Below are positions 13,128 through 64,000 of a stretch of 64,000 nt of DNA, one piece after another; position 1 is the stretch's first letter, and the number at the start of each line of letters is the position of its first letter. The translations under genes were made by a program, and so were the position numbers. The stretch is from Octopus sinensis (lineage: Eukaryota): contig NC_043025.1 of the NCBI RefSeq assembly GCF_006345805.1, forward strand, positions 12,524,001-12,588,000, read 5' to 3'. The notes under the pieces were generated by a model, which saw nothing but the letters and a program-made list of their open reading frames with translations, searched no databases and had not been told where the DNA came from.

Positions 13128-13175
<48 letters not shown>

Positions 13176-15871: not shown

Positions 15872-15907
<36 letters not shown>

Positions 15908-17752: not shown

Positions 17753-17791
<39 letters not shown>

Positions 17792-30431: not shown

Positions 30432-30467
<36 letters not shown>

Positions 30468-32013
30468 GACGGGCTTCTTTTTTAAGTTTCCGTCTACCAA
30501 ACGCAATCACAAAGCTTTGGTTGGCCCAAGGCTATAGTAGAAGACACTTGCCCAAGGTGCCACGCAGTGGGACTGAACCCGGAACCGCCTGATGTTTAAG
30601 TATTACTTTTTTTTCTTTTTACACCTTTCTGATTGCTATTAATATTTGTTCATCATAGGACACACAGAATCACAAGAAGTGGTTTTACGCCAGCAGAACA
30701 GTTAGAGTATAATAGAGGGACAGAGATGGGGGGGGGTCTTCATTATTAACATCCATCTTCCATGCTGGCATGGGTGGAATGGTTTAACAGAAGCTGGTCA
30801 GCTGAAGAGCTGCACTGGTTCCATTGTCTGTTTTGGCAAACCGTAAATCCTCGAGTATGGTCCGCCCTTGAGTATAATACGCAGGGGATTTTTAAGAGGT
30901 TGTACCTCTGTAAAACCTAAACCTTGTGTATAATACGCACCCCTAGAAAGGGAGGCAGGGCAAGGAAAGGGTTAGGATAATGTCTACTTACTGTCCTTCG
31001 AATTTCCATTTGAGCCATTGTCCAGTGGTGAATTTGTACTCAAAGAGGTCATTTTTGTTAGTCAAGTTGGAATTAGAATGGATGTCCCCTGTATAACCAC
31101 CTGAAAAGATATGAAGAAATATATTTCAAATTATCTTTCATGTATCTGTGTGTATGTGTCGTGAAAGAAAAAGGTCAATAAATACTTGCCATTACATTTT
31201 TAATCAGTATTTCTCAGAATTAATTGTCTGGTTACTTGGGAGAAGCTCATAGCACAGAATTCCTTTCCAATCCCACCAGACACAAAGCAAGACTTTTTTA
31301 GGGTGAAGACCCACTTTTGGGGTGGCTCCAGGATTGCTGTCTCTGAACATTTCGGTAGATAGTCCATTTCTCAACCTATCACAATTTGCTTTAAAAAAGG
31401 CGCGTTTTCATTCCGTTTATAAAGTGAATCACAGATGGAAATGCGATCCAAAAGGCTCTTCTCACTCAACTCATGTGGTACCCAAACATCGTAGCGATTT
31501 GTGTGCCGAAGCTTTACCAGGTGCTCATGAACAACGGATTTTGATAGGATGTGCTTTTAACGTTCTACTGGCATATATGTGACCTCCTGGAATCTGTCCA
31601 GAGACGTGCAACCAAACGCATACCCTCCATCAGACACCTACCATATTCTGAGCGCCTTGTTTCCCTGGGCATGGATTCACTGAAGCTCCGGCATCTAGCG
31701 ACGGACTTGGTAAACACCCACAAAGTTATCAACCACCTCACCAACAACAACACTGAACACCTTTTTGATCTCCATGTGTCCAACACATGTGGACATGACT
31801 ACAAAGTCAGAAAACAACACAGCTCCCATGACTTTCGGAAACATTTTTTCACGCTCAGGGTTGCTGAAGCATGGAATAAACTGCCTGCGTCAGTTGTTGA
31901 CTGCCATGACACTGCATCCTTTAAGGCCCTCATGCTTTCCGAAATCCGCCGAAACTACACCTGATTATATATACACTTTAGATGAGTTGTAGTGCACCTG
32001 AGCACTGTACACA

Positions 32014-32046
<33 letters not shown>

Positions 32047-35000
32047 GTTGAGTGCCAAACTGACATCGCCAGTGCTTGTGCCATGTAAAAAGCACAGTGG
32101 TTAGGGCAGAGGATCGCGGTTTCGATTCCCAGTCCGGGTGTTGTGTGTGTTTATTGAGCGAAAACACCTAAAGCTCCACGAGGCTCCGACAGGGGGTGGT
32201 GGCGACCCCTGTTGTGCTCTTTCGCCCTAACTTTCTCTCACTCTTTCTTCCTGTTTCTTGTCCCCGACCTCCTACGCAACCGCTGAGCCTGGATGCGCAT
32301 TCATCCATCCATCGATGCTCTCGGTGTCGGGGGTTGAACCGCTTTCTCTTCTGCGGGTCTTACGAATAGCAAAGGACCACGTTTCGGACTTCTCCCACTA
32401 CTTGCAAGCTCTGGACGAAGACAGCTTCACTCAACAAACGCAACTGCTGAGCCTGGATGCGCATTCATCCATCCATCGATGCTCTCGGTGTCGGGGGTTG
32501 AACCGCTTTCTCTTCTGCGGGTCTTACGAATAGCAAGGACCACGTTTCGGACTTCTCCCACTACTTGCAAGCTCTGGACGAAGACAGCTTCACTCAACAA
32601 ACGCAACTGCTGAGCCTGGATGCGCATTCATCCATCCATCGATGCTCTCGGTGTCGGGGGTTGAACCGCTTTCTCTTCTGCGGGTCTTACGAATAGCAAA
32701 GGACCACGTTTCGGACTTCTCCCACTACTTGCAAGCTCTGGGACGAAGACAGCTTCACTCACAAACGCAACTGCTGAGCCTGGATGCGCATTCATCCATC
32801 CATCGATGCTCTCGGTGTCGGGGGTTGAACCGCTTTCTCTTCTGCGGTCTTACGAATAGCAAAGGACCACGTTTCGGACTTCTCCCACTACTTGCAAGCT
32901 CTGGGACGAAGACAGCTTCACTCAACAAACGCAACTGCTGAGCCTGGATGCGCATTCATCCATCCATCGATGCTCTCGGTGTCGGGGGTTGAACCGCTTT
33001 CTCTTCTGCGGGTCTTACGAATAGCAAAGGACCACGTTTCGGACTTCTCCCACTACTTGCAAGCTCTGGGACGAAGACAGCTTCACTCAACAAACGCAAC
33101 TGCTGAGCCTGGATGCGCATTCATCCATCCATCGATGCTCTCGGTGTCGGGGGTTGAACCGCTTTCTCTTCTGCGGGTCTTACGAATAGCAAAGGACCAC
33201 GTTTCGGACTTCTCCCACTACTTGCAAGCTCTGGGACGAAGACAGCTTCACTCAACAAACGCAACTGCTGAGCCTGGATGCGCATTCATCCATCCGTCAA
33301 TGCTCTCGGTGTCGGGGGTTGAACCGCTTTCTCTTCTGCGGGTCTTACGAATAGCAAAGGACCACGTTTCGGACTTCTCCCACTACTTGCAAGCTCTGGG
33401 ACGAAGACAGCTTCACTCAACAAACGCAACCGCTGAGCCTGGATGCGCATTCATCCATCCGTCAATGCTCTCGGTGTCGGGGGTTGAACCGCTTTCTCTT
33501 CTGCGGGTCTTACGAATAGCAAAGGACCACGTTTCGGACGTCTCCCACTACAGAGGCGCGATCTTGCGAGCTCTGGGATGAAGACCGCTTCACTCAACAA
33601 ACAAACAAACAAACAAACAGCAATTTGGTGGCAATTAAGTCTGCAGAAATAAGTAATACTTTACCGAAGACAAACATGCTTTGGTCATAAACAACAGTGG
33701 AGTGATGATAGCGCTGGAGCGGAGGTGTTCCTGTCGTAAAGGCCCTGGAATGGACAGAAAAGATGGGGGCATGATAAAAGCTGTTAAATCAGGCAATTAC
33801 TGATAAGAGACAGAAAGTTACAGAACAATTTTGATTATGTTAGAGAGAGAGGGAGAGAGTAACAGAGAGAGAGAGAGAAAGAGAAAAACAGAGACAGAGA
33901 GAAAGAGTAATTAAAAAATATGGTTTTCAGATTTGCTCTAAAATAATTCCTCAGTTATAACTCCTAAAATGGCAGTGGTTCTGGCAGAATGTATTGGGTT
34001 GTCCGGAAAGTTCATGCCGATTTATAGTAGCTTACCTTTCGACTTATTTTAGTACATGTTTGAGTCCATAAAATAGGATTTGACTACACCTCCATTTAGA
34101 GCACAGTTTAAGCTGTCTTTTCATGGAAGAAGGTTTATGTTCCTATAACCTGTTTAATTCTGTAACCCTTTAAAATGGAAGATAAGAAAGTTCATTTTCG
34201 GCACTTGATGCTTTGGGAACCAGACAAAAATTGCTGCAGCTCGGCTGGGACGTCTGGAAAGTTCGTGCCGATTTATAGTAGCTTACCTTTCGACTTATTC
34301 TAGAACATGGTTGAGTCCCTAAAATAGGATTTGACTACACCTCCATTTAGAGCACAGTTTAAGCTATCTTTCCGTGGAAGAAGGTTTATGTTCCTATAAC
34401 TGTTTAATTCTGTAGCCCTTTAAAATGGAAAATAAGAAAGTTCATTTTCGGCACTTGATGCTTTGGGAACCAGACAAAAATTGCTGCAGCTCGGCTGGGA
34501 CGTCTGGAAAGTTCGTGCCGATTTATAGTAGCTTACCTTTCGACTTATTCTAGAAAATGGTTGAGTCCCTAAAATAGGATTTGACTACACCTCCATTTAG
34601 AGCACAGTTTAAGCTATCTTTCCGTGGAAGAAGGTTTATGTTCCTATAACCTGTATTAATTCTGTAACCCTTTAAAATGGAAAATAAGAAAGTTCATTTT
34701 CGGCACTTGATGCTTTGGGAACCAGACAAAAATTGCTGCAGCTCGGCTGGGACGTCTGGAAAGTTCGTGCCGATTTATAGTAGCTTACCTTTCGACTTAT
34801 TCTAGAACATGGTGAGTCCCTAAAATAGGATTTGACTACACCTCCATTTAGAGCACAGTTTAAGCTATCTTTCCGTGGAAGAAGGTTTATGTTCCTATAA
34901 CCTGTTTAATTCTGTAGCCCTTTAAAATGGAAAATAAGAAAGTTCATTTTCGGCACTTGATGCTTTGGGAACCAGACAAAAATTGCTGCAGCTCGGCTGG

Positions 35001-37327
35001 GACGTCTGGAAAGTTCGTGCCGATTTATAGTAGCTTACCTTTCGACTTATTCTAGAAAATGGTTGAGTCCCTAAAATAGGATTTGACTACACCTCCATTT
35101 AGAGCACAGTTTAAGCTATCTTTCCGTGGAAGAAGGTTTATGTTCCTATAACCTGTATTAATTCTGTAACCCTTTAAAATGGAAAATAAGAAAGTTCATT
35201 TTCGGCACTTGATGCTTTGGGAACCAGACAAAAATTGCTGCAGCTCGGCTGGGACGTCTGGAAAGTTCGTGCCGATTTATAGTAGCTTACCTTTCGACTT
35301 ATTCTAGAAAATGGTTGAGTCCCTAAAATAGGATTTGACTACACCTCCATTTAGAGCACAGTTTAAGCTATCTTTCCGTGGAAGAAGGTTATGTTCCTAT
35401 AACCTGTTAATTCTGTAACCCTTTAAAATGGAAAATAAGAAAGTTCATTTTCGGCACTTGATGCTTTGGGAACCAGACAAAAATTGCCTGCAGCTCGGCT
35501 GGGACGTCTGGAAATTCGTGCCGATTTATAGTAGCTTACCTTTCGACTTATTCTAGAAAATGGTTGAGTCCCTAAAATAGGATTTGACTACACCTCCATT
35601 TAGAGCACAGTTTAAGCTATCTTTCCGTGGAAGAAGGTTTATGTTCCTATAACCTGTATTAATTCTGTAACCCTTTAAAATGGAAAATAAGAAAGTTCAT
35701 TTTCGGCACTTGATGCTTTGGGAACCAGACAAAAATTGCTGCAGCTCGGCTGGGACGTCTGGAAAGTTCGTGCCGATTTATAGTAGCTTACCTTTCGACT
35801 TATTCTAGAACATGGTTGAGTCCCTAAAATAGGATTTGACTACACCTCCATTTAGAGCACAGTTTAAGCTATCTTTCCGTGGAAGAAGGTTTATGTTCCT
35901 ATAACCTGTTTAATTCTGTAGCCCTTTAAAATGGAAAATAAGAAAGTTCATTTTCGGCACTTGATGCTTTGGGAACCAGACAAAAATTGCTGCAGCTCGG
36001 CTGGGACGTCTGGAAAGTTCGTGCCGATTTATAGTAGCTTACCTTTCGACTTATTCTAGAAAATGGTTGAGTCCCTAAAATAGGATTTGACTACACCTCC
36101 ATTTAGAGCACAGTTTAAGCTATCTTCCGTGGAAGAAGGTTTATGTTCTAACCTGTATTAATTCTGTAACCCTTTAAAATGGAAAATAAGAAAGTTCATT
36201 TTCGGCACTTGATGCTTTGGGAACCAGACAAAAATTGCTTGCAGCTCGGCTGGGACGTCTGGAAAGTTCGTGCCGATTTATAGTAGCTTACCTTTCGACT
36301 TATTCTAGAAAATGGTTGAGTCCCTAAAATAGGATTTGACTACACCTCCATTTAGAGCACAGTTTAAGCTATCTTTTCGTGGAAGAAGGTTAATGTTCCT
36401 ATAACCTGTGTTAATTCTGTAACCCTTTAAAATGGAAAATAAGAAAGTTCATTTTCGGCACTTGATGCTTTGGGAACCAGACAAAAATTGCTGCAGCTCG
36501 GCTGGGATGTGTTACCCCACCCTTCATATTCACCAGATATTGCTCCTTCGGATTTCCACTTATTCAGGTCTCTGCAGAATAGTCTGCAGAATGGTAAAAA
36601 TTTCAATTCCTTGGATGACGTCTCTGTCTCTTGTCCAATCCAATATAAAATGTCCAAAGAGAGAAAAAAAGAAAAAACAATCACTGTGAAACACTTACCG
36701 TCCCCAAGACTTATCCTTTACATCAAACCTGAGGAGATCATTCAGCATGGTTTTCCTGAAGATAAAATGATAAAAACAGGTAGAAATGACAGTCAGAAAA
36801 ATTGAAAACCCAGGGAGGTATCATTAACCATTAGCATTTAAAACAGGCCACATGCCGTCCAAATATTCTCCCGCTTTATGCTTAAATTGGCAAGATCTGA
36901 CCTTTCATACCTATCCTACATAGTCATTCTATAAATAAACAAGCACATCAAGGAAATGTAGCATAATGGATGTCCACGTAGTGGTCATCCCTCTTATTTG
37001 TATGTAATATAATTTTTCTGAATTTGTATGTAATATAATTTTTCTGAATCTTCAGATTTTTCTATATGCCAAACCACTGGTTTTAAATTGATATTAATCA
37101 AATTAATATTCAATTTTTCACCCTTATTATTTTAAATTTAAATATACATATACATATATATGCACGCATTTGTTTCTCTCCTTGTTTATTTCTGTGTATC
37201 GTTCTGTAGAAGAGCGTAGGCTCAAAACGTAAAAGACTTTTTCTATTCCTGAGCACCATACTAATACATTTGTTTGTTTGTACACCACCTGCCTTCGTCT
37301 TTTGTTTATTTTCATAAAGCTTCCCGT

Positions 37328-37358
<31 letters not shown>

Positions 37359-40300
37359 ATATATAGTTAATCCAAACATGAAAAAACAACACTCAGACGT
37401 GGAACAAGTATAGTGATATTGGACACTCAGGAAAGGAGAGAAAGGAGGAGGATGTAATGTTTCGAGTGGAGCTCTTCGTCAGAAACATAGAAAAGGGAAA
37501 GATCCAAGGATGGAAAAAAATCGCCAACAATCATCATCATCATCGTTTAAACGTCCGTTTTCCACGCTAGCATGGGTTGGACGGTTCGACCGGGGTCTGG
37601 GAATCCAGGGGCTGCACCAGGCTCCAGTCTGATCTGGCAGTGTTTCTACAGCTGGATGCCCTTCCTAACGCCAACCACTCCGCAAGTGTAGTGGGTGCTT
37701 TTTACGTGCCACCTGCACAGGTGCCAGGGTGTCCGGCATCGGCCACAATCGGTTGGAGCTTTTAACGTGCTACCGGCCTGGAAGCCAGCTAAGGTGGCGC
37801 TGGCAACGGCCACGTTCAGATGGTGCGTTGTACCTGTAATTCAAAGGGTCAGCCTTGTCACACTGGATCTCTCTCACAACAACCTTAAGGGTACATATGT
37901 CTGTGGGGTACTCGTTCACTCGCACGTTAATTTAACGAGCAGGCTATTTCATTGGTCAGATAAGCTGGAATCCTTGTCACCATAACTGTTGGAGTATCAT
38001 TTATAGAAGAGGGTTTATTAAAATATCTTTTGTAGGGTGCTTGCTTTTCACTTCATGCCCTTGCTTGATGGTGCTGGGGTCACCATGTACAGGGCCAACC
38101 AGGTCCACTAGTGCTCCCCATCACTGGTGGTCCTGTGGCAGCCTCTCTACATCCTCCATGTTAATGTCAAGCCTCTAGAATTCTTCCTTAATCACATCCA
38201 GCCGTTTGGTGTGGGGGTCTGCCATCGAGCCTCTTCCAGCCAGCATCTGCTGCATGAAATAAGGGTAAGGCCCTGCGGGGACGATACGGTGAATAGCTAT
38301 GAGTGGGTGTGTCTAAAAACAAAATCTAGGGATGCTTTGTAATGTCTTGGGGTAGATCTGTGATAAAAGCCATTCCAGCCGTGACCTTTTCGCATGTCGG
38401 ACGTTACTACCTTATTCAATGTCTTCCCTTTCTTTGTTGTTTAAAAAGGAATGTGTGATTTAAGGAAGATTTAATTGCTATGTCTAGCAGTTTGAGCGAC
38501 TGTGTAGGCGTCTAGGGATCTGTCGGAAGAAGTTGCACGCTTTAGAAACTCCTGAACAACTCCAGCAGTCAGTAATTGATGAAGGTCGATAAATTAAGTA
38601 CCAGTTACGCACTGAGGTCGATGTAATCGAATTAATCCCTTCGTCTGTCCTTGTTTGTCCCCTCTATGTTTAGCCCCTTATGGACAATAAAGAAATATAT
38701 ATATACATATATATATATATTTATGTATTTCATCTGTCGTTACGTTCTGAGTTCAAATTATGCACTGGGGTCGATATAATCGACTTAATCCCTTTGTCTG
38801 TCCCTCTGTTTGGTGTGGGGGTCTGCCATCGAGCCTCTTCCAGCCAGCATCTGCTGCATGAAATGAGAGTAAGGCCCTGCGGGGACGATATGGTGAATAG
38901 CTATGGGTGGGTGTGTCTAAAAACAAAATCTAGGGATGCTTTGTTTTTAATGTCTGGAGGTAGATGTACCTAAACATCTTAGAGGTGGGCATGTTAAAAT
39001 GTCCAGATGTGGTGCATCAAGACATCTTAGAGGTGGGCATGTTAAAATGTTCAGGTGTGGTGCATCAAGACATCTTAGAGGTGGGCGTGTTAAAATGCTC
39101 AGGTGTGGTGCATCAAGACATCTTAGAGGTGGGTGTGTTAAAATGTTCAGTTGTGTTGCATCAAGACATCTTAGAGGTGGGCATGTTAAAATGTTCAGGT
39201 GTGGTGCATCAAGACATCTTAGAGGTGGTTGTGTCGAAATGTGTGGAGGCAGATATATCAGACGTGGGGAAGGGTTGTGTCAGTGCCTGGTAAAAACAGC
39301 AGTAATCAAGCGTGTGTTGCCTAGAGAGGAATATGTCAGAATGTTTGAAATGAAATAAATAGCATTACTAACCCGTTGTCTCCACCAAAGACATAAATAG
39401 CTTCATTGAAAGCCACAACTGTATGTTTGCTCCGTCTGGAAAAATAAAGAAGACAAAATAAGCCAGAAGTCAACAGGAACTGTATTTAACCCTTTTGATA
39501 CCAACCAGGCTGAAACCAGCTCTGGTTCTGAGTACAAATGTCTTGTTTCCATAAGTTTTGAATTAAAATCTTCCACCAAACCTTAGTCACAATTTATGTT
39601 CCTAACACTAGCTGAATGATAACTAAGTTATTTTATGAAATTCTCTATCATATTTAAAGTAATTGAAAGAAACACAGAGCATCTCAAAATAAATACAGTA
39701 ACGAAAGGGTTAAAGTTCTTATATAAAATTTAAGAGATAATGATGATGATTCTGACTGAGGGCTGGCGAACCAGATGGCTGCACCAGGCTCCAATCTGAT
39801 CTGGTAGAGTTTCTACAGCTGGATTCCCTTCCTAACGCCAACCACTCCAAGAGTGTAGTGGGTGCTTTTTACGTGCCACTGGCACGGGGGCCAGTCAGGC
39901 AGTACTGGCAACGACCTCGCTTGAATCCTTTTACACATGCCACCGGCAACAGTGAAGACGGCAGAGGGAGATTTGGTTGCTATTTCTAGCAGGTCGGATA
40001 ACCACATAGAAGCACCCACATCTGTTGATGTTGTTTGTAAATAAAACACAAAATAAATAATTTTTTGTTAAACAAAGTAAATAAAACAAAAGCACAAAGT
40101 AAGGATCGACTAGTCATGACTAGCTAGCGCAGATGCGCGACTACGCGAGTGCGCGCACCGGGACCACTGTTCTCAAGTAGTACCCATAGTAATGATCGAC
40201 TAGTCGTGACTAGCTAGCGCGGATGCGCGAGTACGCGCACCGGGACCACTGTTCTCAAGTAGTACCCATAGTAATGATCGACTAGTCGTGACTAGCTAGC

Positions 40301-46137: not shown

Positions 46138-46215
46138 TCACATGGTCCTTTTTACCAGAAAGTAGAGATCAGCGAAAAACACGACAGTACCTAAGAGGAT
46201 CCCGACTAACATTTG
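46138..46215 (-). CDS. TMEM199: TMEM199 terminal exon (provisional exon 6)
   Basis: [25 protein letters not shown]; tttcag acceptor. Confidence 0.85.
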   Translation of the reverse strand, partial: QMLVGILLGTVVFFADLYFLVKRTM

Positions 46216-49004
46216 CTGAAATAAACGAGAGGAAACAATAACGAGTTAATTAAGGATCGAAAGAATTGCAAAATTATTAATCATCAATGTTCATAACACG
46301 ATATTTTTCAAACATTTAATTTCATCATCGTGGTTTTTGTGTGTGTCTTTGTGGTTATGTTTGTATCTTGTCACTGCCTGACACCCAATGTTGGTTTGTT
46401 TATGACCCCCGTAACTTAGCAGTTTGACAAAATGAAACCATCATCATCATCATCGTTTAACGTCCGTTTTCCATGCTAGCATGGGTTGGACGGTTCGACT
46501 GAGGATGTGGGAAGCCAGGAGGCTGCACCAGGCTCAAGTCTGATCTGGCAGTGTTTCTACAGCTGGATGCCTTTCTAACACCAACCACTCTGTGAGTGTA
46601 GTGGGTGCTTTTTACGTGCCACCCACACAGGTACCAGGCGAGGCTGGCAACGGCCACGGTCGGATTGGTGTATTTTATGTGCCACTGGCACGGAAGCCAG
46701 TCGAGGTGGCACTGGCTTCGGCCACGATTCGGATGGTGCTTTTTACGTGCCACCAGCACGAAAGCCAGTCAAGGCGACGCTGGCATCACCAATAGAATAA
46801 ATACAAGAACAAAAAAGTACTGGGGTCAAATTGTTTGACTGAACTCTTTTAAGGCTGTGTCCCAGAAGGACTGCAGTTTAATGATTGCAACAAATAAAAG
46901 GATAGAGATAACCCTTTAGCCATTAAACCAGCCAGATCCAGCCTCTCACACCTACCCTACAGTGTCATTCTAAAAATAAACAATAACATCATTGAAGTCT
47001 CAAAGCTATGAGATAATGCAGGATTAATTCAAAACAAGGCCGGATCCAGCCTCTCACACCTACCCTACAGTGTCATTCTAAAAATAAACAATCACATCAT
47101 TGAAGTCTCAAAGCTATGAGATAATGCAGGATTAATTCAAAACAAGGCCGGATCCAGCCTCTCACACCTACCCTACAGTGTCATTCTAAAAATAAACAAT
47201 CACATCATTGAAGTCTCAAAGCTATGAGATAATGCAGGATTAATTCAAAACAAGGCCGGATCCAGCCTCTCACACCTACCCTACAGTGTCATTCTAAAAA
47301 TAAACAATCACATCATTGAAGTCTCAAAGCTATGAGATAATGCAGGATTAATTCAAAACAATTTAAATAAAAAAGTATTACATTTAACAGAGTAATGTGA
47401 ATGCTAAAGGGTTATGGGTACGCAAGCCTATGGAGTGCTCATTGAAATCTTGAAGTTATGAGATATACACATCATCATCATCATCGTTTAACATCCGTTT
47501 TCCATGCTGGCATGGGTTGGATGGTTTGACTGGGGACTGGTGAACCAGATGGCTACACCAGGTTTCAATCTGATCTGGCAATGGTTCTACAGCTGGATGC
47601 CTTCCTAATGCCAACCACTCCGAGAGTGTAGTGGGTGCTTTTAATGTTCCACAGGCACGGGAGCTAGTCAGGCGGTCCTGGTATCGACCGTATTCATGAG
47701 GTGCCTTTTACGTGCCACTGGCACAGGAACCAGTCTAGGGACACACGTTCAGATGATGCATTTTACATGCCACTGGAAATGGGGGCCAGTCAGGGGACAC
47801 TGGTCACAGCTACGATTTTGGTTTTACTTGACTCAACAGGTCTTCTCAAGCATATCATATCGCCTGATACATCAAGGGTACTCTTAAAGGGGCTGGACAT
47901 GCAACACTGGCATTGGCCATGACTGCGATCTCACTTTAGTTGCCAGATCTCCTATCAATGCCTCTGTGAGGCCCAACGTTCGAAGGTCATGCTTCACCAC
48001 CTCATCCCATGCGTTTCTCTGTGTGTGTGTCTGTGTGTGTGTGCCTGTGTGTGTGTGTGTGTGTGTTGTGTGTGTGTGTGTGTCTGTGTGCGTGTCTGTG
48101 TGTCTGTGTGTGTGTCTGTGTGAGTGTGTGTGTGTGTCTGTGTGTGTGTGTCTGTGTGTGTGTGTGTCTGTGTGTGTGTCTGTGTGTGTGTCTGTGTGCC
48201 TGTGTGTGTGCCTGTGTGTGTGTCTGTGTGTGTGTGTCTGTGTGTGTGTGTCTGTGTGTGTGTGTCTCTGTGTGTGTGTGTGTGTGTGTGTGTGTCTGTG
48301 TGTGTGTATCATGCACCCACAGTAGTGGGTATGTTCTACCTCTTCCACAGGTTCCTTCTACAGAGAGTGTGTGTGGCACGCACGGAACGCTCACAAATAC
48401 ATACGGATACACACATAAGCTGCATGTATGCAAAAACCATAAAAATGAAAACGGAATCAAATGAACATTTGCAACTCCGCAGCGACTTACGATGGCCATG
48501 TCTGGCTCCTCCATACTGGCTTCTGCAGCTTTGTAACCAAAGGCAAAAGCACCACCAACAGTGAGGACAAAATTCACAACAGCGATTATTTGAAGGTTCA
48601 TAGCTTTCACTGAAATAAAAGACAGGACATGACAATACACTGTAAGTTATAGGCACAGGAGTGGCTGTGTGGTAAGTAGCTTGCTTATGAACCACATGGT
48701 TCCGGGTTCAGTCCCACTGCGTGGAACCTTGGGCAAGTGTCTCCTACTATAGCCTCGGGCCAACCAAAGCTTTGTGAGTGGATTTGGTAGACGGAAACTG
48801 AAAGAAGCCTGTCATATATATATGTATTAGGCGTAGGAGTGGCTGTGTGGTAAGTAGCTTGCTTAAGAACCACATGGTTCCGGGTTCAGTCCCACTGTGT
48901 GGCACCTTGGGCAAGTGTCTTCTACTCTAGCCTTGGGCCGACCAAAGCCTTGTGAGTGGATTTGGTAGACGGAAACTGAAAGAAGCCAGTCGTATATATG
49001 TATA

Positions 49005-49248: not shown

Positions 49249-52200
49249 TACACAGACATACATTATATAAATATATATATAATCCACTTAGGCATTGTGA
49301 GACTAATAACTGGGTATAGAATTCAATCTTCTTCTTCTTCTTCTTCTTCTTACAGCATCCACCCGGGGTGGGTTGAGCTGGCTTCATTCATCCTCAGTTT
49401 TGCATCTCTCACAAACGCCGACCAGTCCTGGCGATTTGAGGCTAACGACCGCGTGATCTCCAACCACTCCTTATTCCAGCGGCGAACGCCGTAGACATGG
49501 GGGCCTAGGTTGGGTTCCAGATCAGCCTTGACTGTCATCAGCCAGGTTTTTCGTTGTCCACCACATCGCTTTCACATGAATTCTACCACATGGTGGACAT
49601 GTGGTAGAATTCAAAACACATATGGTACAGAACACAATATTGTGTGTGAGTACGGAGTGGTAATAGAAAACAAAAAGATCATCATCATTATCATCATCAT
49701 CATCGCTTAGCGTCCACTTTCCATGCTGGCATGGGTTGGACAGTGCAACTGGGGTCTGGGAAGCCAGAAGGCTGCACCAGGCTCCAGTCTGATCTAGCAG
49801 TGTTTCTACAGCTGGATGCCCTTCCTAACGCCAACCACTCGGTGAGTGTAGTGGGTGCTTTTTACGTGCCACCAGCACGGAGGCCAGGTGTGGTTGGCAA
49901 ACGGCCATGATCGGATGGTGCTTTTTACGTGCCACCAGCACGGAGGCCAGTCGGGGCAACGCTGGCAACGGCCACATTCGGATGGTTCTCTTATGTGCCA
50001 CCGGCACTGGTATCACAGCTACAATTTCCATTTATGTTGATTGATTTTTTGATTTTTGATTTTTTGATTTTCAAAACCCAAATGTTATGGAATGAATTTA
50101 GTTGGGTACCAGGACAACACCCAATCGCTTCATCAGAGCCTTAAATATGAAGTACACTTTATTTGGCAGAGTTACATTTTCGGAACATGTAGAAAATTAA
50201 AATGAAATTTTGATTGAAGATTTTAATTTAGATCATTTTAAAATCGGGATGTTGTATCATAGAACCAGGGATAGTCTAGAGGTGGTGGGTACCGGAAGGG
50301 TTGAACCCCAATACCGATCACTGCAAAGCAGACTGCTTACCACACAGCCATCAAGAAATAGATTGTCAAATATATGTAATGAAATACTCACGTTCCTTGC
50401 CAACGTTTCCATCCACGATTTTTTTCTGAAATAAAACAAATATACAAACAGTTAAGAAGATATAAGGGTGGGGCGTAAGACAAGGTTTATCAGGTAATAT
50501 TTTCTCTCCCTTACTCTTTTACTTGTTTCAGTCATTTGACTGCGGCCATGCTGGAGCACCACCTTTAATCGAGCAACTCAATCCCGGGACTTATTCTTTG
50601 TAAGCCCAGTACTTATTCTATTGGTCTCTTTTGCCGAACTGCTAAGTGACGGGGACGTAAACACACCAGCATCGTTTGTCGAGCAATGCTAGGGGAACAA
50701 ACACAGACACACAAACACACACACTTATATATACATATATACGACGGGCTTCTTTCAGTTTCTGTCTACCAAATCCATTCACAAGGCATTGGTCGGCCCG
50801 GGGCTATAGCAGAAGACACTTGCCCAAGATGCCACGCAGTGGGACTGAACCCGGAACCATGTGGTTGGTTAGCAAGCTACTTACCACACACCCACTCCTG
50901 CTCTCTCTCACTCTCTTTTTAACATGCATTTTAGATGTTCCTGATGAGATAGTCATAGTGCTAGTTTTCTTTTAAAATAACTGAGACATCTTGGTTCAAG
51001 GTCAATTTTTCACTTAACTCTCATATTTTACGTGCTGGTGGCACGTAAAAAGCACCATCCGATTGTGGCCGTTGCCAGCCTTGTCTGGCTCCTGTGCCGG
51101 TGGCACGTAAAAAGCACCATCTGACCGTGGCCGTTGCCAGCCTCGCCTGGCACCTGTGCATGTGGCACGTAAAAAACACCATTTTGAGCGTAGCCGTTGC
51201 CAGTAAAGCTGGACTGGTCCTCATGCCAGTGGCACGTTACACTCACGGAGTGGTTGGCGTTAGGAAGGGCATCCAGCTGTAGAAACCTTGCCAGATCAGA
51301 TTGGAGCCTGGTGCAGCCTCCTGGCTTCCCAGACCCCAGTTGAACCGTCCAACCCATGCTAGCATGGAAAACGGACGTTAAACGATGATGATGATGATGA
51401 TGATGATTACTGACTTTACATATTTTGATCCGATATTTTTACTGAACCAAATTTCAATTATTCCACCTCCAAATCTAGCTTAGGACTGGACCGTCATTAC
51501 TAGACAGATTCCATTCAATTTGGTTGAGAACCGAATTAGTGATGAAGCCTAGAAGTGCTTCTGAGTAACTGAATGTTGACCTTAAGAACATACTCACCCA
51601 CTGCTATTGGTGAATGATACACACACACACAGATACACACACACAGACAACACACACACACACACACACACAGACACACACACAGACACACACACACAGA
51701 CACACACACACACACACAGACACACACAGACACACACACAGACACAGACACAGACACACACAGACACAGACACAGACACACACACACACACACACAGACA
51801 CACACACACAGACACACACACACAGACACACACACACACAGACACAGACACACACACACAGACACACATACACACACACTCCGAAAAGCTCTATCTGCAA
51901 TGATTTCATCTCAATCGAAGGAGAGGGGCTTTCTCCGTCCGGGTTGCGGATCCGTGGAATAAGCTACCGGACGAGATGGTGAAGATGCCAACGACCGCTC
52001 AATTCAAAGTCTCTCTTGACCAGAAATGGCCTGAACTCTTTGCATGAACACCCTCCCTGTACATGACTCCATGTCCCCCTACATGGCCTTGCTTTTTGCT
52101 TTTTGAGCCAAAAAATTAATTAACTAACTAACTAACATATGTTGATGTTTATAGATATGTATATACATCTACTTATGTATGTATGCATGTATGTACGTCT

Positions 52201-53277
52201 GTATCTATCTATCTGTTTGTCTTCCTATGTATGTATCTATCTATCTAACTACCTATCTATCTACCTAACTATCTATCTATCTACCTACCTACCTATCTAT
52301 CTACATATCTCCGTCCGGGTTGCGGATCCGTGGAATAAGCTGCCGGACGAGATAGTGAAGATGCCGACGACCGCTCGGTTCAAAGTCTCCCTTGACCACA
52401 AGTGGCCTGAACTCTTTGCATGAACACCCTCCCCGTACATAACTCCATGTCCCCCTACGTGGCCTTGCTTTAACACACACACACATTACTGGCAGAAAGA
52501 GACATAGACTTGGAGTCTTGGAGATACTTACAGTTCTGTGAACATTCTGGGTCATTTGTTTGTATTCTCTGTTTTCGGCCTCTCTCCTCAGTCTTTGAAC
52601 TCTGACCTCCAGCTCTGCACTCTAGACACACAGACAGACAAAGAGACAGTAAGCCGCAACAAAACAAACTGAAAGTAAATATCCAGTAACTAGAGAAAGG
52701 TGTGGAGTTCAAAATTGGCAAAGAAACTGAAAGTAGGGGTCTGTTCTTCCATACGGGGCTGAAACATGATGGACGCTCACTAAAGCATTGAAGAAGCAGT
52801 TGGATGGTTGTTATCCGAGGATGCTTAGAAATGGCACTCAGTGTCTCCTGGAAGAGTCAGACAACAAACGCTGACTTGTACCAGGGACTGCCAAAGGTAA
52901 CATTGAAGATATAGCAGAGAAAGATGAGGCTAGCTGGATGCTGCGTCAGACATACTGATGAAATTGCTAACAAGCTGGTGCTATGGCAACCAACGGAAGG
53001 AAGAACCAAGAGAGGAAGGAGGAAGATGGCCTGTATTGACAACTTGCTGGAGGATAATGGTATGGAAAGGAGTACAGGAGCTGAGGATCATTATGAAAGA
53101 TTGAGATAAGTGGGGAAATAGTTTTGGGGTGTCCTGAGGGACGACCTAGATAGATTGGATGGATGGATGGATAGACAGACAGACAGATAGATAGAAAGAA
53201 GGATGGATGGATGAATGAATGGATGGATGGATAGATAGGTAGATGGATGGATGGATGGATGGATGGATGGATGGATG

Positions 53278-53330
<53 letters not shown>

Positions 53331-53729
53331 GTAGGTAGGTAGGTAGATAGGTAGATAGATAGATAGGTAGGTAAATAGATAGGTAGGTAGATAGAAAGAA
53401 GGATGGATGGATAGATAGATAGAAGAGAGAATACATAATGATGGAAGGTGCCTAGTGACTGAGGTACACAACAGAGTCACAAGGTACCTGACCAGTACTA
53501 CGAGGTACCTGAGCATGAAAAAGGGATGTTAAATGATGATGATGAAAGAATGGATGATGACAGTCACAAGAAAACTACCTCTGATCATATTTGCGATTCA
53601 ACCAAGATTCACCTGGGGCTAAACAACCCTCTACATCAAAAAGGCTTACCCTTTGAGGAGGTTCATATTTCTGTAAGTGCAATTCGGAGTCTGTTATCAT
53701 TTCGTGAATATAAAGAGGTTCTGTTCTCT
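46138..53729 (-). CDS. TMEM199: TMEM199 / VMA12 (V-ATPase assembly factor) orthologue, 5'-incomplete: 5 exons, 401 nt
   Basis: Joined peptide [132 protein letters not shown] aligns by eye to recalled human YLHELLEGSEIYLP..PPR|NPELVARLEK..NEEYKRITRNV..LGKQV..IFNFIVTV..AELY. Two TM segments; all junctions GT-AG and in phase. Confidence 0.88.
46912..47411. mobile_element. piggyBac-like MITE containing 4 x 108-bp tandem
   Basis: CCCTTTAGC..GCTAAAGGG ends; units at ~46934, 47042, 47150, 47258; family relics at 2028-2730, 24820-24926, 62810-62915. Confidence 0.75.
48015..48340 (+). repeat. (TG/TCTG)n tract plus ~35-bp flanking motif
   Basis: Inverted partner at 51585-51880. Confidence 0.9.
48491..48609 (-). 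CDS. TMEM199: TMEM199 provisional exon 5
   Basis: [39 protein letters not shown]; tttcag / gtaagt. Confidence 0.88.
49340..49575 (-). mobile_element. RTE LINE 3' fragment with (GAA)n tail
   Basis: [47 protein letters not shown]. Confidence 0.75.
50392..50425 (-). CDS. TMEM199: TMEM199 provisional exon 4 (34 nt)
   Basis: [11 protein letters not shown](L); tttcag / gtgagt; phase 0-1 fits both neighbours. Confidence 0.75.
51585..51880 (-). repeat. (CA/CAGA)n tract plus the same flanking motif, inverted
   Basis: Reverse complement gtgtgtgtatcattcaccaatagcagtgggt..atgttct vs 48301 tgtgtgtatcatgcacccacagtagtgggtatgttct. Confidence 0.9.
52532..52621 (-). CDS. TMEM199: TMEM199 provisional exon 3
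   Basis: [30 protein letters not shown]; ctag / gtaagt. Confidence 0.87.
52735..53110 (+). mobile_element. Degenerate RTE LINE fragment
   Basis: [43 protein letters not shown]. Confidence 0.78.
53650..53729 (-). CDS. TMEM199: TMEM199 provisional exon 2
   Basis: [26 protein letters not shown]; tttcag / gtaagc; needs an upstream exon ending in phase 1. Confidence 0.82.
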
Positions 53730-57091: not shown

Positions 57092-57654
57092 GAGAGAGAC
57101 TTTTACTTTAAGAAAAATATTAAATTCAGGTATAGTCATGGCTATAGTTTCAAGTTCAGTCCCACTGCATGGCACCTTGGGTAAGTGTCTTTCTGCTATA
57201 GTCTTGGGCTGACCAAAGCATTGTGAATACATTTGGCAGGTGGAAACTGAAAGAAGCCCATCATATATATATTTATGTATATATGTGTGTGTGTGTGTCT
57301 CTGTGTCTGTGTTTGTCCCCCGCCACTGATTGACAACCAGTGTTGGTGTGTTTATGTCCCGGTAACTTAGCGGTTCAGCAAAAGTGACTGATGGAATAAG
57401 TACTAGGCTTAAAAGGAGAATGAATTCTTCAAGGCGGTGCCCCAGCATGGGCGCAGACTAACGACTGAAAATAAGTGAAAGATAACAAAAAAAAATAAAT
57501 AATAAATAACAAAAACAAAAATAAAATTCCAAGTTTTCATTAGGTTTTTCAAAATATCAAAACATCCGGAAACAACAACAAAAGAATATAAATAATGTCT
57601 GTCTTGTATTCGTATCCAGGATGTAGAAATCTGTTCCAATCTTTGTCACTTTGC

Positions 57655-58333
57655 TTTATCGACCCCCTAAAGGGACGAAAGGAAATGTTGACCCCTATGG
57701 GTTTAGAACCCAGATTGTAAGAGCTTGGATTTAAATACTAAAAGAGTTATTCTGTACAACGATGTACCGATTCTGTTATTCCCTCCTTTACTTTATCGAC
57801 CCCCTAAAGGGACAAAAGGAAAAGTTGACCCCTATGGGTTTAGAACCCAGATTGTAAGAGTTTGGATTTAAATACTAAAAGAGTTATTCTGTACAACGAT
57901 GTACCGATTCTGTAATTCCCCCCTTTACTTTATCGACCCCCTAAAGGGACGAAAGGAAATGTTGACCCCTATGGGTTTAGAACCCAGATTGTAAGAGCTT
58001 GGATTTAAATACTAGAAAAGTTATTCTGTACAACGATGTACCGATTCTGTTATTCCCTCCTTTACTTTATCGACCCCCTAAAGGGACAAAAGGAAAAGTT
58101 GACCCCTATGGGTTTAGAACCCAGATTGTAAGAGCTTGGATTTAAATACTAGAAAAGTTATTCTGTACAACGATGTACCGATTCTGTTATTCCCTCCTTT
58201 ACTTTATCAACCCCCTAAAGGGACGAAAGGAAATGTTGACCCCCTATGGGTTTAGAACCCAGATTGTAAGAGTTTGGATTTAAATACTAAAAGAGTTATT
58301 TTTGTACAATGATCTACTGATTCTGTCCTTCCC
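57655..58333. repeat. 5 x 137-bp tandem immediately 3' of the TBCK stop codon
   Basis: gaccccctaaagggac anchors at 57661, 57798, 57935, 58072, 58209; resembles SINE-B sequence (tcgacccc..aaagg..gttgacc). Confidence 0.88.
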
Positions 58334-58354
58334 TCATCACAGCGTTGGTGATTT

Positions 58355-61026
58355 TTAAATATCCGCAGGTGGCACTGTTAACAGGCCTGTAGGTTTTAGC
58401 ACATCAATTCCATGATGCAGCGTAGAAACACGAGGGCAGCCGAGGGCAACAAGGGAATTTGCAAACTCCGACATTGTCTTTATAAGGGTTCCGATGACCA
58501 CTTTGACCTGTAACCGATGGTTGGTGAGGATCTGCGCCATTTGGGTCGACATCAGGGTTCCGTCAGCATTGAAAGCATTATGGAAAGGAATGTTAATGCT
58601 CCCTGGTACGGTGCCCCGCTTGAAGTCCTCTGCAGATCTTATGTCGATAATCAGCAGTTTGGGTTTTGCTGTTGGACTCCTTGAAACCGAAGCCGTTCTC
58701 AGCTCCCCGAGATCTATCAAGTCTTCAGCCGATATTCTTGGACACTTCTCGAGTTTCAGTTCTTCGATTGGAATGTTGTCTTTTGAGAGTTCATTGGTCT
58801 GTGGGTTGTTATACTCTTTGGTGTAATAGGATGTGCTTGTTCGAGTGTGTGGCCACACGGACTTTTTGGACACGTGTGCATGCTGACGGAACGTTGCACT
58901 TTTTGGTGTGCTGCAGAAAATTTTGATGGAATCTTGGACGCATTTTTCAATATCGATTTCCGGCATATCGGAGAAGAGGAGGATGCAATCGTTAAAGCCA
59001 TATGCCAGAAGTCTATCGCGGAGCTGGTGTAAAATAGCAACGCCGATACACAACGGGAAAGACGAGTTGCCAAGCAACAAAGTGTCCCAGAGGTGAACAA
59101 TTTTGTGCAGAGGAAATACATGGGCATACATCGTTAAGAACCAAGGAATTGCATACAGATCCGGGATAAAGCCAATGGCATCAAGATGGTTACTTAATTC
59201 AGGATCGTGGTAGGCAACCAGGTGGGAGAATACAGCCAGGTATTCCTGGATGACAGGTGAGTTATCCTTCAGGAAAAATTTATTCAGGTATTTTGGTATA
59301 AAAGCATCCAGGCAGGCAAAAGCTAGGGCTTCGTTATTGAAGTTCAGGCCAAGAAGGGAGCACACAAGGAATCAAGTCCTTGCCAATAGACGTACTCCGT
59401 GTGGCTGATGATCCAGGCTTTTAAAATTCGTTTGAATTTTTTATGGGCTTCAGGTGATGACAGTAACTCGTGATACTGATGACAACGTGGTATGTCTACT
59501 TCGATCTGTCGGTCAGTTGGTGTAGGGGTCTCTTTATCAATGGAATCGTAACGAACTTGGATGTCGCCTTCAACCTCGAGCAGTGCCGCCCACACCTGAG
59601 CTCGGTACAAAGGAGGTGTATCGACTCTGGCTTCTCTCCAGATATGGGCTTTTTTGAATGGATAGCCCAACAGTAAGCGTTCGTAGAGAATGATACGGTG
59701 AAACTGGTACTCCACGTCTTTCTCTCGAATGATGAGAGGTAACGTAGCTGCCTGAGAGAGGTCACCACTGCTGGGAGACGTCGGTAGACCCCTGAGCATC
59801 TCTTTCTCATCTTCTAATAAGGGGTAGTAAAATGCATCTCCAATATCCTTCAGTCTATTTCTAAGCTGTTCCTGCGACAACGCTATCATGGTGTTGTCCA
59901 AAAGTTCAGACTGGTCGCGCTTTTGACCAAACCATTCGCCAGTGTTCAAAATAAAGCAAGGTAAAAGAGTAACCGGCGGTCTCGATTTGATCAAGCCAGC
60001 CCGCTTAAGAACAGACTCAAGGTCACCCCCAGCCAGCCTCCACAGGTAATACACTTCTTCCATCGTCCGCTGAGAGAGGTTGTCGACTTTTCTCATCAAT
60101 GCTATCTGACCTTCAGTGGGGAGCTCCAAATGCTTCAAGTCGATTCTACTGGAAAAGAACTGGATCCCGTTCAGGTAAGGAATTCCCCGGGGTATTTTCG
60201 ATGCAAAAGCTTTATGCTGAAGCAATTCCGAAGAGGACAGGCGATTGATAGGGCTCACTGTGAGACATTTTCTTAACAGGTCGACTGTCTCAGGAGAGAG
60301 TGTCTTCACAACATCTTCTAATTTATTGTCCTTCAGGATTATATCCATGGGTTCGTATTCGGAATTGACGAAGGCCAAAATTTTACTGATGGCCTGCTGT
60401 AGAGTTGCCGTCGCCCACAGTTGACGACCAACAAATGCCTCCAGCAGGACAAGACCCAGGGACCAAATATCGACTTTCGGTCCTAAATTAAGTTGCACGA
60501 CAGCATTACTGAATTCATCGACCACTACGGGGCCACAACAGATGACTTCGGGTGCCATATAACGGACCAGGCCGAGCGGGTAGGCAACGTTCTGTCCCCA
60601 TTCGGTCATATAGTTCATACCGTACTTTGAAATTTTCACATTGCCTTCATTATCAAACAGAATCGTATCGGGGCACAAGTTTTTGACAATAATGTTTTTC
60701 TTACTCAGATAATCCAGTCCTTCGATGATGTCAAAAGCCATTTTCAGCAAATCCGCTTCGTTCATAGGTACTTGGTCCTTCATCCGCTGGCTCAGGTTGC
60801 TTTTGTAGTGTTCGGCGACAACAATCAGCCGTTCGTGCTTGCCGCGGGATATATGTATGTATTTGCAGAGGCTGGGGTGTCCCAGCGTAGTCAAATGCTG
60901 GAATTTGCCGAGGATCTTGATGGAGTTGGGTGTTAAGGGCAGGCCGTTTGCACCGCATTTGTCGTTCGGATGACAAGAGGCGAAAAACGTCGTCACGCTA
61001 AACTCGGCTTCGCCAACCTTTGACAT
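58355..61026 (-). CDS. TBCK: TBCK (pseudokinase-TBC-rhodanese), single-exon, ~890 aa, with one 1-nt frameshift at 59347-59348
   Basis: [33 protein letters not shown]; pseudokinase (VKN for HRD, KYG for DFG); TBC fingers IEVDIPR and YWQG; rhodanese [17 protein letters not shown]; ends LLTVPPADI*. The two track ORFs (59344-61176, 58355-59365) join into one CDS if one base is restored (CAPFL[10 protein letters not shown]). ATG at 61024-61026. Confidence 0.93.
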
Positions 61027-61159
61027 GATTCTTCTTCTTCTTCTTCTTATTATTATTATTATTATTTCTGCTTTTTTGTTCTTTCTTCCTACACGTAACC
61101 AGGTTGCCGTCCCTGGGAGATATAAACAAACTGGTTCCTGATCGTCCCCAAAAAACAGA

Positions 61160-61400
61160 CAATCCGGACGTGACACAAAACTAGAAATACATCAATTCGC
61201 TACTTAACACATCCAGTAGGCCAGCAGGGAGTCGTAGCATGCTTGGATCCCCTTTCTGATTTCCTGGTCCCCACAAACAGAAACCGAGACGATGTCACGG
61301 TGAAACATGACCAAATCAAAAATGTACGCCCTCCGGAAGTTGCTCTTAGGTTATCTCCCCTACTTAAATACCCGCTGCTTCCTGTTTTCATCACGTGATG
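61160..61400 (-). promoter_or_regulatory. Putative TBCK promoter / 5' leader
   Basis: Non-repetitive and CpG-containing. CCGGAAGT (ETS-type) at 61333-61340, CTTCCTGT at 61378-61385, palindromic CATCACGTGATG (E-box/CLEAR-like) at 61389-61400, GACGTGAC at 61167-61174. Confidence 0.5.
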
Positions 61401-61589
61401 TTTACACTATTTGAAGGCGTGGCTGTTTAACCCTCGGTCAGGGCCGATCCAGCAGCCCTACGACAAAAAGGATAGCAGTTAGTGCTCGTCTCGTCCTTCG
61501 TCGGGGGAATTCTGGTATGGGCACCCTTAAAGCACCCCCATTACTCTATTTTTTTTAGAATTTTCTGGAAACTTTTACGAATTTGTGTT

Positions 61590-62305
61590 CTACAGACGGG
61601 GTCGATTAAATAAATACCAGTTACGCGCTGGGGTCGATAGAATCGACATAACCCCTTTGTCTGTCCTTGTTTGTCCCCTCTGTATTTGACCCCTTGTGAG
61701 CAATAAAGAAATAGGTATTTCGTCTGCGGTTACAATCTGAGTTCAAATTCCGCCAAGGTCGACTTTGCCTTTCATCCTTTCGGGGTCGATAAATTAAGTA
61801 CCAGTTACGCACTGGGGTCGATATAATCGACATAACCTCTTTGTCTGTCCTTGTTTGTCCCCTCTGTGTTTGGCCTCTTGTGGGTAGTAAAGAAATAGGT
61901 ATTTAGTCTGCCGCTACGTTCTGAGATCAAATTCCGCCGAGGCCGGCTTTGCCTTTCATCCTTTCGGGGTCGATTAAATAAATACCAGTTACGCACTGGG
62001 GCCGATATAATCGACTTAATACCTATGTCTGTCCCCTCTGTGTTTAGCCCCTCGTGGGTAGTAAAGAAATATTTATTTCGTCTGTCTTTACGTTCTGAGA
62101 TCAAATTCCGCCGAGGTCGACTTTGCCTTTCATCCTTTCGGGGTCGATTAAATAAGTACCAGTTACGCACTGGGGTCGATGTAATCGACTTAACTCGTTT
62201 GTCTGTCCTTGTTTGTCCCCTCCATGTTTAGCCCCTTGTGGGTCGTGAAGGAATAGGCATTTCGTCTGTCTTTACGTTCTGAGTTCAAATTCCGCCGAGG
62301 TCGAC
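61590..62305 (+). repeat. 4 x ~180-bp tandem of SINE family B body
   Basis: cggggtcgat anchors at ~61597, 61781, 61964, 62139; family copies at 20417-20650 and 24296-24760. Confidence 0.8.
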
Positions 62306-63134
62306 TATAATTTCTATTTGATTTTTATTTTGATGTTTCAAGTTGATGTACTTGACTCAATAAGTCTCCTCAAGCACAGCAGGTACCCCCTACGATCCAA
62401 GGTAAGCACAGTAGGCCGTCATTTGTCGGGTCTTCGCAGTCACAGCATATCTCCAAAGGGTCTCGGTCGAATCGTTGCCTCTGTGAGGCCCAACATTCGA
62501 AGGTCGTTTTTTTAAAAACCCAGTACTTATTTTATTGCTCTCTTTTTGCCAAAATGCTACGTTACAGGGATGGGAACACACCAACACCAACTGCGAAGCG
62601 GTGGTGGGGCACAAACACAGACAGAAAGACATAGATATGTACACATGAAGGACTTTTTAAAATCAGTTTTTCTTTTCTTTGGTTCAGAAAGAAATAGAAG
62701 TTATTTCCCTTCATCCGTTAATTCATTTGAACCCTCAACACGCGTGACACAGGCCTTGGTTCTGTCAACAAAATTTCTCTTTTGACCCTTGACCTATTTC
62801 ATATTGAAACTGGCCACATCCAGCCTCTCACACTTGCTCTACAATGTCATTCTAAAAAAAAAAACAATCACATAATAGAAACCTCAAAGCTATGAGCAGG
62901 ATCAATTCAAAATAATGTGAACAAACATGTACAGGTGTGGCTGTGTGGTAAGTAGCTTGCTTACCAAACACATGATTCCGGGTTCAGTCCCACTGCATGG
63001 CACCTTGGGCAAGTGTCTTCTACTATGGCCTGGGCCGACCAAAGCCTTGAGAGCGGATTTGGTACACAGAAGCTGAAAGAAGCCCGTCGTGTATGTGTGT
63101 ATGTATCTGTGTGTATATATATATATATATATAT

Positions 63135-63753: not shown

Positions 63754-64000
63754 TACATATATATAATATATATATATATATATATACAACGGGCTTGTTT
63801 CAGTTTCGTCCTCAGGTCCACTCACGGGACTTTGGTCGGCCCGGAGCGATATCAGGCAGACACCTGTGCCCGAACTCGTGACCATGTGATTGGGAAAGCC
63901 AACGTCTTACCCTTTCAGCCACGATACATAGAGATAGAGACACTTTTTGTACACAAACAGAAAGTTCCACCCATCAAAGACACGATAAGAACGGTTTTTA

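Follow-up and report, generated by a model that had tools for sequence, protein, structure and literature searches.

The stretch considered here comprises 64,000 nucleotides (nt) of the Octopus sinensis genome (NCBI RefSeq assembly GCF_006345805.1, contig NC_043025.1, positions 12,524,001 to 12,588,000 of the forward strand; hereafter "the window", in whose coordinates all features are given unless another locus is named). On its minus strand, at 58355-61026, it contains the full-length gene for TBCK, whose coding region is free of introns according to both the list of open reading frames (ORFs) and the sequence alignment. TBCK is a conserved gene that is split into many exons across animals. 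We argue, with a probability of roughly 0.8, that the TBCK of coleoid cephalopods is an old, functional "orphan" retrogene that has replaced its parent and is nested in intron 1 of TMEM199, the gene of the vacuolar ATPase (V-ATPase) assembly factor Vma12. According to the proposed history, a spliced TBCK messenger RNA (mRNA) would have been reverse-transcribed and inserted in sense orientation into TMEM199 intron 1, at a time preceding the octopod-cuttlefish divergence; the parent with its many exons would subsequently have been lost, leaving the retrocopy as the only TBCK, held since then under strong purifying selection.

In the window, the gene is made up of two minus-strand ORFs. The first one (59347-61026) has Pfam matches to Pkinase (6.6e-30) and to profile positions 3-101 of RabGAP-TBC, and its translation includes both the Arg finger (IEVDIPR) and the Gln finger (YWQG) of the TBC domain; the second one, which is open at 58358-59365 and overlaps the first by a few bases, matches RabGAP-TBC profile positions 102-216 (1.8e-24) and Rhodanese (8.3e-08). 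Since the RabGAP-TBC profile is divided between the two ORFs in this complementary way, they represent one TBCK protein that is interrupted inside the TBC domain, exactly at the junction (...CCCTTCTTGGCCTGAACTTC...), where the frameshift creates the TGA that terminates the first ORF. The architecture of Pkinase, RabGAP-TBC and Rhodanese domains with TBC Arg and Gln fingers is that of the TBCK family, and together with a length of ~890 amino acids (aa) it corresponds to canonical metazoan TBCK; the N-terminal 560 aa are 57-61% identical to named bivalve and gastropod TBCKs and ~50% identical to those of vertebrates. It is in gene structure only that the octopus gene departs from the canonical form, with one coding exon versus at least 17-19 in other molluscs. 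An earlier note on this DNA, made from the letters alone, had described a TBCK running collinearly over 2672 bp without an intron, with the two fingers and the rhodanese motifs intact and a single lesion in 2.7 kb, and each of these statements holds on alignment and Pfam analysis.

For comparison, the 2672 nt of the window were aligned with the TBCK coding sequences of Octopus vulgaris, Octopus bimaculoides, one Logan octopod contig and two decapodiforms. The TBCK region is 96.9% identical at the DNA level to that of O. vulgaris (GCA_951406725.2) and 91.7% identical to that of O. bimaculoides. At the protein level, ~6 of 767 compared residues differ from O. vulgaris, with 331 of 332 aa identical in the C-terminal piece, and the N-terminal piece shares 97% aa identity with O. 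bimaculoides XP_014773502.1. Among the four octopus coding sequences (2673-nt codon alignment) there is exactly one indel column, namely a 1-nt deletion in a run of C in the window. The ratio of non-synonymous to synonymous substitution rates (dN/dS) was determined according to Nei-Gojobori on each side of this frameshift separately, without reading through the stop. Compared with O. vulgaris, 14 synonymous and 4 non-synonymous differences are found upstream of the frameshift, and 7 synonymous and 0 non-synonymous ones downstream of it, in the last ~330 codons. A frameshift of any age would have freed these codons from constraint, yet the constraint has been kept. Given also the homopolymer site and the intact sequence of the closest relative, an error of the assembly or consensus is the most likely source of the deletion, with a very recent or heterozygous allele as the alternative; the deletion is not evidence of pseudogenisation.

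If the frameshift were real, TBCK would be broken in the species or the individual, be it as a recent pseudogene or a loss-of-function allele, or would be split into two polypeptides. The assembly itself speaks for this possibility, with CC at 59347-59348 where O. vulgaris has CCC, as does the fact that an intact-ORF protein from the same species was not recovered, the members of the Logan octopus cluster belonging to other species (93-97% aa identity). We consider it unlikely, however, in view of a lone indel in 2673 nt that falls on a homopolymer, of the intact O. vulgaris gene at 96.9% DNA identity, of the absence of any non-synonymous change beside seven synonymous ones in the 330 downstream codons, and of TBCK being single-copy and constrained in all coleoids sampled.

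Constraint is evident in all comparisons among the octopus sequences, with dN/dS values of 0.017-0.08 for every pair, on both sides of the frameshift. In a maximum-likelihood tree, the cephalopod TBCKs form one clade inside Mollusca, with a support of 100 in the Shimodaira–Hasegawa-like approximate likelihood-ratio test (SH-aLRT) and a stem length of 0.33. When N- and C-terminal queries were run against a collection of 5.8 billion proteins, no second cephalopod TBCK was present among the matches listed, which comprise one octopod and one decapodiform cluster; likewise, the C-terminal piece alone, aimed at fragmentary second copies or at Nautilus, gave no cephalopod matches among those listed. 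Thus, the earlier note's proposal that the copy stayed under selection is supported by the low dN/dS together with an intact ORF in five other assemblies, and the situation that it had named as contrary to a functional retrogene, a multi-exon parent beside a decaying copy, is not what is found, given the low dN/dS, the single clade and the lack of a second listed copy. A processed pseudogene was considered as a separate candidate and rejected, since there is one homopolymer indel only, dN/dS is below 0.1 on either side of it, and no parent was found among the listed protein matches.

The intronless state is not peculiar to O. sinensis. In all five other coleoid assemblies examined, which represent four genera, TBCK is one uninterrupted ORF (Table 1), and the coding region is colinear, at 2672-2688 nt, in the window, O. 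bimaculoides, O. vulgaris and two Sepia-type assemblies. The TBCK of Argonauta is ~150 aa longer than that of other cephalopods, with one insertion between residues ~305 and 317. Outside the cephalopods the gene looks different: according to TBLASTN, the TBCK of Ostrea edulis (899 aa) is distributed over at least 19 coding blocks in 18.2 kb, and that of Haliotis cracherodii (897 aa) over at least 17 coding blocks in 26.7 kb. The block boundaries of oyster and abalone coincide at many points (e.g., ~64/65, 88/89, 152/153, 241/242, 314/315, 640/642 and 861/863), from which it follows that a multi-exon TBCK is ancestral for molluscs and that the sampled coleoids have the intronless gene in common as a derived trait. 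A single-exon TBCK as the ancestral molluscan condition, the other contrary outcome envisaged in the earlier note, is thereby contradicted.

The neighbourhood of the gene provides the second line of evidence. When five exons of the window are joined at canonical splice sites (TMEM199 exons 2-6, Table 1), a stop-free translation is obtained that ends in FLVKRTM before the stop codon and matches O. vulgaris TMEM199. A further exon of 67-68 aa is included in an O. vulgaris gene model (CAI9744252.1, 830 aa), where it lies 2.9 kb upstream of TBCK and is joined to TBCK from ~codon 126; it has a 43%-identical, same-strand counterpart 0.8 kb upstream of TBCK in a Sepia-like contig, with the common donor AAG/GTAAATAT. 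A query composed of this upstream exon and the five window exons retrieved TMEM199-like of Argonauta hians (216 aa, 100% coverage) and TMEM199 isoform X2 of O. sinensis, both of which join the upstream exon to exon 2 exactly as predicted, and full-length bivalve and gastropod TMEM199 proteins align with the joined query from their first residues; the O. sinensis and Argonauta proteins can be aligned with these over their entire length. The upstream exon is, thus, exon 1 of TMEM199. At each of the four coleoid loci with a located exon 1, intron 1 of TMEM199 encloses TBCK in the same orientation, and in Sepia pharaonis the deposited annotation already nests the two genes. In the species of the window, TMEM199 exon 1 is predicted to lie upstream of TBCK just past position 64000, outside the window.

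Which of the two genes has moved can be read from the outgroups. In Ostrea edulis, TBCK is located on OX387705.1 at 61.18 Mb, with GDI/REP, Asparaginase_2 and FANCF as neighbours, which are not present at the cephalopod TBCK loci; TMEM199 is located on another chromosome (OX387704.1, 54.74 Mb), where it has the exon pattern seen in cephalopods and an intron 1 of 9.5 kb that gave no TBCK match. In Mercenaria, Dreissena and Mactra, too, TBCK and TMEM199 are found on contigs of differing size. The divergent upstream neighbour of TMEM199 is SFSWAP (DRY_EERY/Surp domains), in oyster as well as in both Sepia-type loci; a tblastx comparison of the oyster SFSWAP region with the octopus upstream flanks gave no matches within the 5-10 kb covered. 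Since the TMEM199-SFSWAP pair has been kept in oyster and cuttlefish, TMEM199 is the stationary gene and TBCK the newcomer, at a site in coleoids that is unrelated to the TBCK locus of the oyster. The precise loss of all coding introns combined with the arrival at an unrelated locus, within an intron, is a signature of retroposition and argues against intron loss in situ. The reading of this gene as a retrogene, as the earlier note had suggested, is therefore supported by its intronless state in coleoids, its multi-exon state in oyster and abalone, its new locus and its low dN/dS.

Loss of all introns in situ would mean that recombination with complementary DNA (cDNA) had cleared the gene at its ancestral locus, the nesting being either ancestral or the product of a later DNA rearrangement. 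Complete intron loss, taken alone, fits either route, cephalopod genomes are generally known to be heavily rearranged, and neither a poly(A) tract nor a target-site duplication is seen in the flanks of the gene, which agrees with the earlier note. On the other hand, oyster TBCK and TMEM199 reside on separate chromosomes and the oyster TBCK neighbours are not found at the cephalopod loci; the TMEM199-SFSWAP pairing common to oyster and cuttlefish indicates a stable host locus; and the later, precise move of an intronless gene in sense orientation into an intron would require two events, as against one for retroposition. In the known cases of reverse-transcriptase-mediated intron loss by homologous recombination with cDNA, the gene stays at its locus and usually only some introns are lost, mostly towards the 3' end. 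Coleoid TBCK resembles these cases in the precise removal of introns and the intact ORF, but it differs in having moved to another locus and in retaining not a single coding intron. Loss in situ is, thus, very unlikely. Finally, contamination of an assembly by cDNA or transcripts, of which an intronless copy of a multi-exon gene is the expected appearance, is effectively refuted by synteny, as six independent assemblies from four genera agree in the gene and in its surroundings, namely a conserved upstream block and TMEM199 exons on either side.

Table 1. Features of the window and of the coleoid loci used for comparison (L, locus number; positions refer to the sequence named in the second column).
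Feature	Sequence	Position	Strand	Basis or remark
TBCK, N-terminal piece	Window	59347..61026	-	ORF list; 560 codons from ATG at 61026; pseudokinase and first half of TBC
TBCK, C-terminal piece	Window	58355..59346	-	Other frame, ~330 codons; second half of TBC and rhodanese; stop 58355-58357
Sole lesion, 1-nt deletion in C-run	Window	59347-59348	-	GGCCTG versus GGCCCTG in O. vulgaris (CC versus CCC)
Conserved upstream block, candidate 5' untranslated region/promoter	Window	61100..61596	-	Identity to O. bimaculoides
137-bp x5 tandem array	Window	57649..58335	.	Tandem Repeats Finder; begins 20 nt past TBCK stop
184-bp x3.9 tandem array	Window	61597..62306	.	Tandem Repeats Finder; from 570 nt upstream of ATG; bounds conserved block
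TMEM199 exon 2	Window	53650..53729	-	Splice sites, translation; joined to exon 1 in RefSeq O. sinensis and Argonauta proteins
TMEM199 exon 3	Window	52532..52621	-	Pfam Vma12; AG/GT boundaries
TMEM199 exon 4	Window	50392..50425	-	Splice mapping and translation
TMEM199 exon 5	Window	48491..48609	-	Pfam Vma12; splice sites
TMEM199 exon 6 including stop	Window	46138..46215	-	Splice sites
LZTR1-like multi-exon gene	Window	4458..39485	-	Pfam on single exons: Kelch_1, Beta-prop_ATRN-LZTR1, BTB, BACK
TBCK, O. bimaculoides	XP_014773502.1			Uninterrupted ORF; 2673 bp, 890 aa
TBCK, O. vulgaris	L014	12729-15551		Uninterrupted ORF
TBCK, Sepia-like	ENA contig			Uninterrupted ORF; 895 aa
TBCK, Argonauta hians	L017	11522-14671		1049-aa single ORF, in-frame insertions
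TBCK, Sepia pharaonis	L019	8906-11725		Uninterrupted ORF; 895 aa from position 9038
TMEM199 and TBCK, O. vulgaris	L014	Exon 1 10001-10201; TBCK 12879-15551; exon 2 ~21240-21302	Same strand
TMEM199 and TBCK, Argonauta	L017	Exon 1 5001-5276; TBCK 11522-14671; exon 2 18767-18847	Same strand
Vma12 gene and TBCK, Sepia pharaonis	Deposited annotation	Gene from 8050 to at least 21725; TBCK 9038-11722	Same strand	199-aa Vma12 gene encloses TBCK

As to its transcription, TBCK may use a promoter of its own within the intron or that of its host; the gain of promoter-like DNA proposed in the earlier note is a conjecture. Upstream of the gene, the conserved block (100-570 nt from the ATG) is 77-94% identical to O. 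bimaculoides per 100 nt over 61100-61596 (81-94% at 61100-61499, with a maximum of 94% at 61300-61399), the alignment ending at 61596; for the remaining alignable blocks of the intron, identity ranges from 73 to 90% and is mostly 83-90%. At ~61340-61400 the block contains an E-box, ATCACGTGATGAA (CACGTG at 61392-61397), ~370 nt upstream of the ATG, and a TATTTAAG element, and the ratio of observed to expected CpG is 0.9-1.16 over 60.7-62.5 kb. The conservation of this block within Octopus, together with its E-box, suggests that a promoter belonging to TBCK itself is possible. An extended E-box, CACGTGATGAA (window 61392-61397, L013 9411, L002 1620), precedes TBCK at -361/-371 in three Octopus species and at -583/-590 in two decapodiforms, which carry ACACGTGATGAA at these positions. 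Aligning the octopus and cuttlefish upstream regions of TBCK revealed nothing conserved beyond this 11-nt, E-box-containing motif; with a chance of ~0.06 for any common 11-mer (a post-hoc estimate), the shared motif is a weak lead.

Indirect indications of transcription starting at the host come from nine Logan contigs that encode a protein with 99% identity to S. pharaonis TBCK. Each has its first base precisely 30 nt ahead of the exon-1 donor of TMEM199 and extends across the intron to cover the TBCK ORF in full. With the k=31 of Logan assemblies, these contigs start k-1 bases before the donor, as would be expected if the assembly graph branched at this splice site, and hence point to RNA-derived reads; such reads would hold both spliced TMEM199 mRNA and transcripts running from exon 1 into TBCK. 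Models of TBCK also exist in RefSeq and EukProt. A bolder idea would be that TBCK and TMEM199 form one conserved transcription unit, in which the promoter and exon 1 of TMEM199 supply the start of TBCK mRNAs, which then either run into intron 1 or splice into the retrogene, so that the nesting itself would be functional. At present we hold this to be doubtful; if true, the expression of a V-ATPase assembly factor would be coupled to that of an endolysosomal/mTOR regulator, in an arrangement kept since before the octopod/decapodiform split.

Several points weigh against an old retrogene that has replaced its parent. (i) The absence of a parental copy is based on annotated and predicted proteins and not on a search of whole-genome DNA. 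(ii) The window itself carries the frameshift, whose reading as an error is only probable. (iii) The octopods and decapodiforms sampled set no more than a minimum age for the event, that of their split. (iv) The 10 kb preceding TBCK in O. bimaculoides yielded no TMEM199 exon 1. (v) Support for transcription is indirect, coming from Logan runs of unstated sample type. (vi) Neither a poly(A) remnant nor a target-site duplication is seen, in flanks that are occupied by lineage-specific tandem arrays. Erosion of these two hallmarks is to be expected after >200 million years, but the mechanism is thus inferential. Reverse transcription, the timing of the parental loss and the mode of transcription are what we infer; the lack of introns and its derived nature, the nesting, the other locus in the outgroup, the constraint and the single copy among annotated proteins are what the data show.

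Gene models at these loci show several irregularities. The O. vulgaris model CAI9744252.1 (L014 10001-15551), which fuses TMEM199 exon 1 to TBCK, is either an annotation artefact or a true host-retrogene fusion transcript. TMEM199 is modelled with only 84 aa in O. bimaculoides (L012 16314-19396) and with 120 aa in O. vulgaris (L014 21252-25551), starting from internal Met codons, and S. pharaonis TBCK is modelled with 574 aa (L019 10001-11725) despite the open 895-aa ORF. The nesting seems to upset gene prediction. In the window, TMEM199 exon 4 opens with an A7 run, and in isoform X2 of RefSeq O. sinensis the reading frame is shifted over exons 4-6, which may reflect another homopolymer-length problem or an alternative acceptor at the start of exon 4.

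Concerning the remainder of the window, the earlier note had placed TBCK in an intron-rich neighbourhood with LZTR1 as the next gene. The intron-rich neighbourhood is confirmed, but it is TMEM199/Vma12 that adjoins TBCK, and the LZTR1-like gene lies farther downstream, with Kelch beta-propeller exons at ~39.5-21.3 kb followed by two BTB-BACK units at ~16.5-4.5 kb. The 137-bp and 184-bp arrays flank the TBCK unit; the copy number of the former varies between species, and conservation with O. bimaculoides stops exactly at the latter. Long tandem arrays also fill introns of the LZTR1-like gene (~27860-29580, ~32170-33550 and ~34150-36560), with ORF periods of ~123, 165 and 250 nt. By eye, transposon-like ORFs were noticed at 54137-54469, 31207-31407 and 18041-18328 (all on the minus strand), with the look of two mariner/Tc1-like transposase fragments and one C-terminus of ORF2 of long interspersed nuclear elements; one of the mariner/Tc1-like fragments is situated in TMEM199 intron 1, downstream of TBCK.

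Retrogene replacement giving rise to an orphan retrogene has a non-vertebrate example in amphioxus SYCP1, where likewise the function of a lost multi-exon parent passed to a copy that derives from mRNA, consists of a single exon, occupies an unrelated site and relies on the regulatory DNA there (PMC5803294). The present case differs in that it concerns TBCK in coleoids, in the position of the copy within a host gene's first intron, where it reads in the sense direction, and in a retention that goes back beyond the octopod/decapodiform split. No literature report was found on an intronless state of TBCK, on TBCK together with TMEM199, or on this retrogene in octopus or other cephalopods. Intronic retrogenes that use or borrow the promoter of their host have been described among mammalian and Drosophila retrocopies. 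With these, coleoid TBCK has in common the same-strand position in a host intron and a chimeric model that includes host exon 1 (CAI9744252.1); in contrast to them, the E-box block of octopus suggests a promoter that is possibly its own, and the host-driven route is only a candidate.

Taken as a whole, coleoid TBCK provides a clear example of retrogene replacement, for which there are precedents; it is an instance of a known phenomenon and not a new kind of biology. What is added to the earlier note is the sharing of the intronless gene by five other coleoid assemblies, its nesting in TMEM199 intron 1 at a new locus, and a lesion that is probably not decay. The nesting seems to account for faulty models in both genes—the truncated TMEM199 proteins, the TMEM199-TBCK chimera of O. 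vulgaris and the short TBCK of S. pharaonis. In humans, loss of TBCK leads to a severe neurodevelopmental disorder. A major clade that runs on a nested retrocopy of this gene would represent a well-dated retrogene replacement outside vertebrates and insects, and it offers a natural test case for how a retrogene gains expression within the intron of its host.

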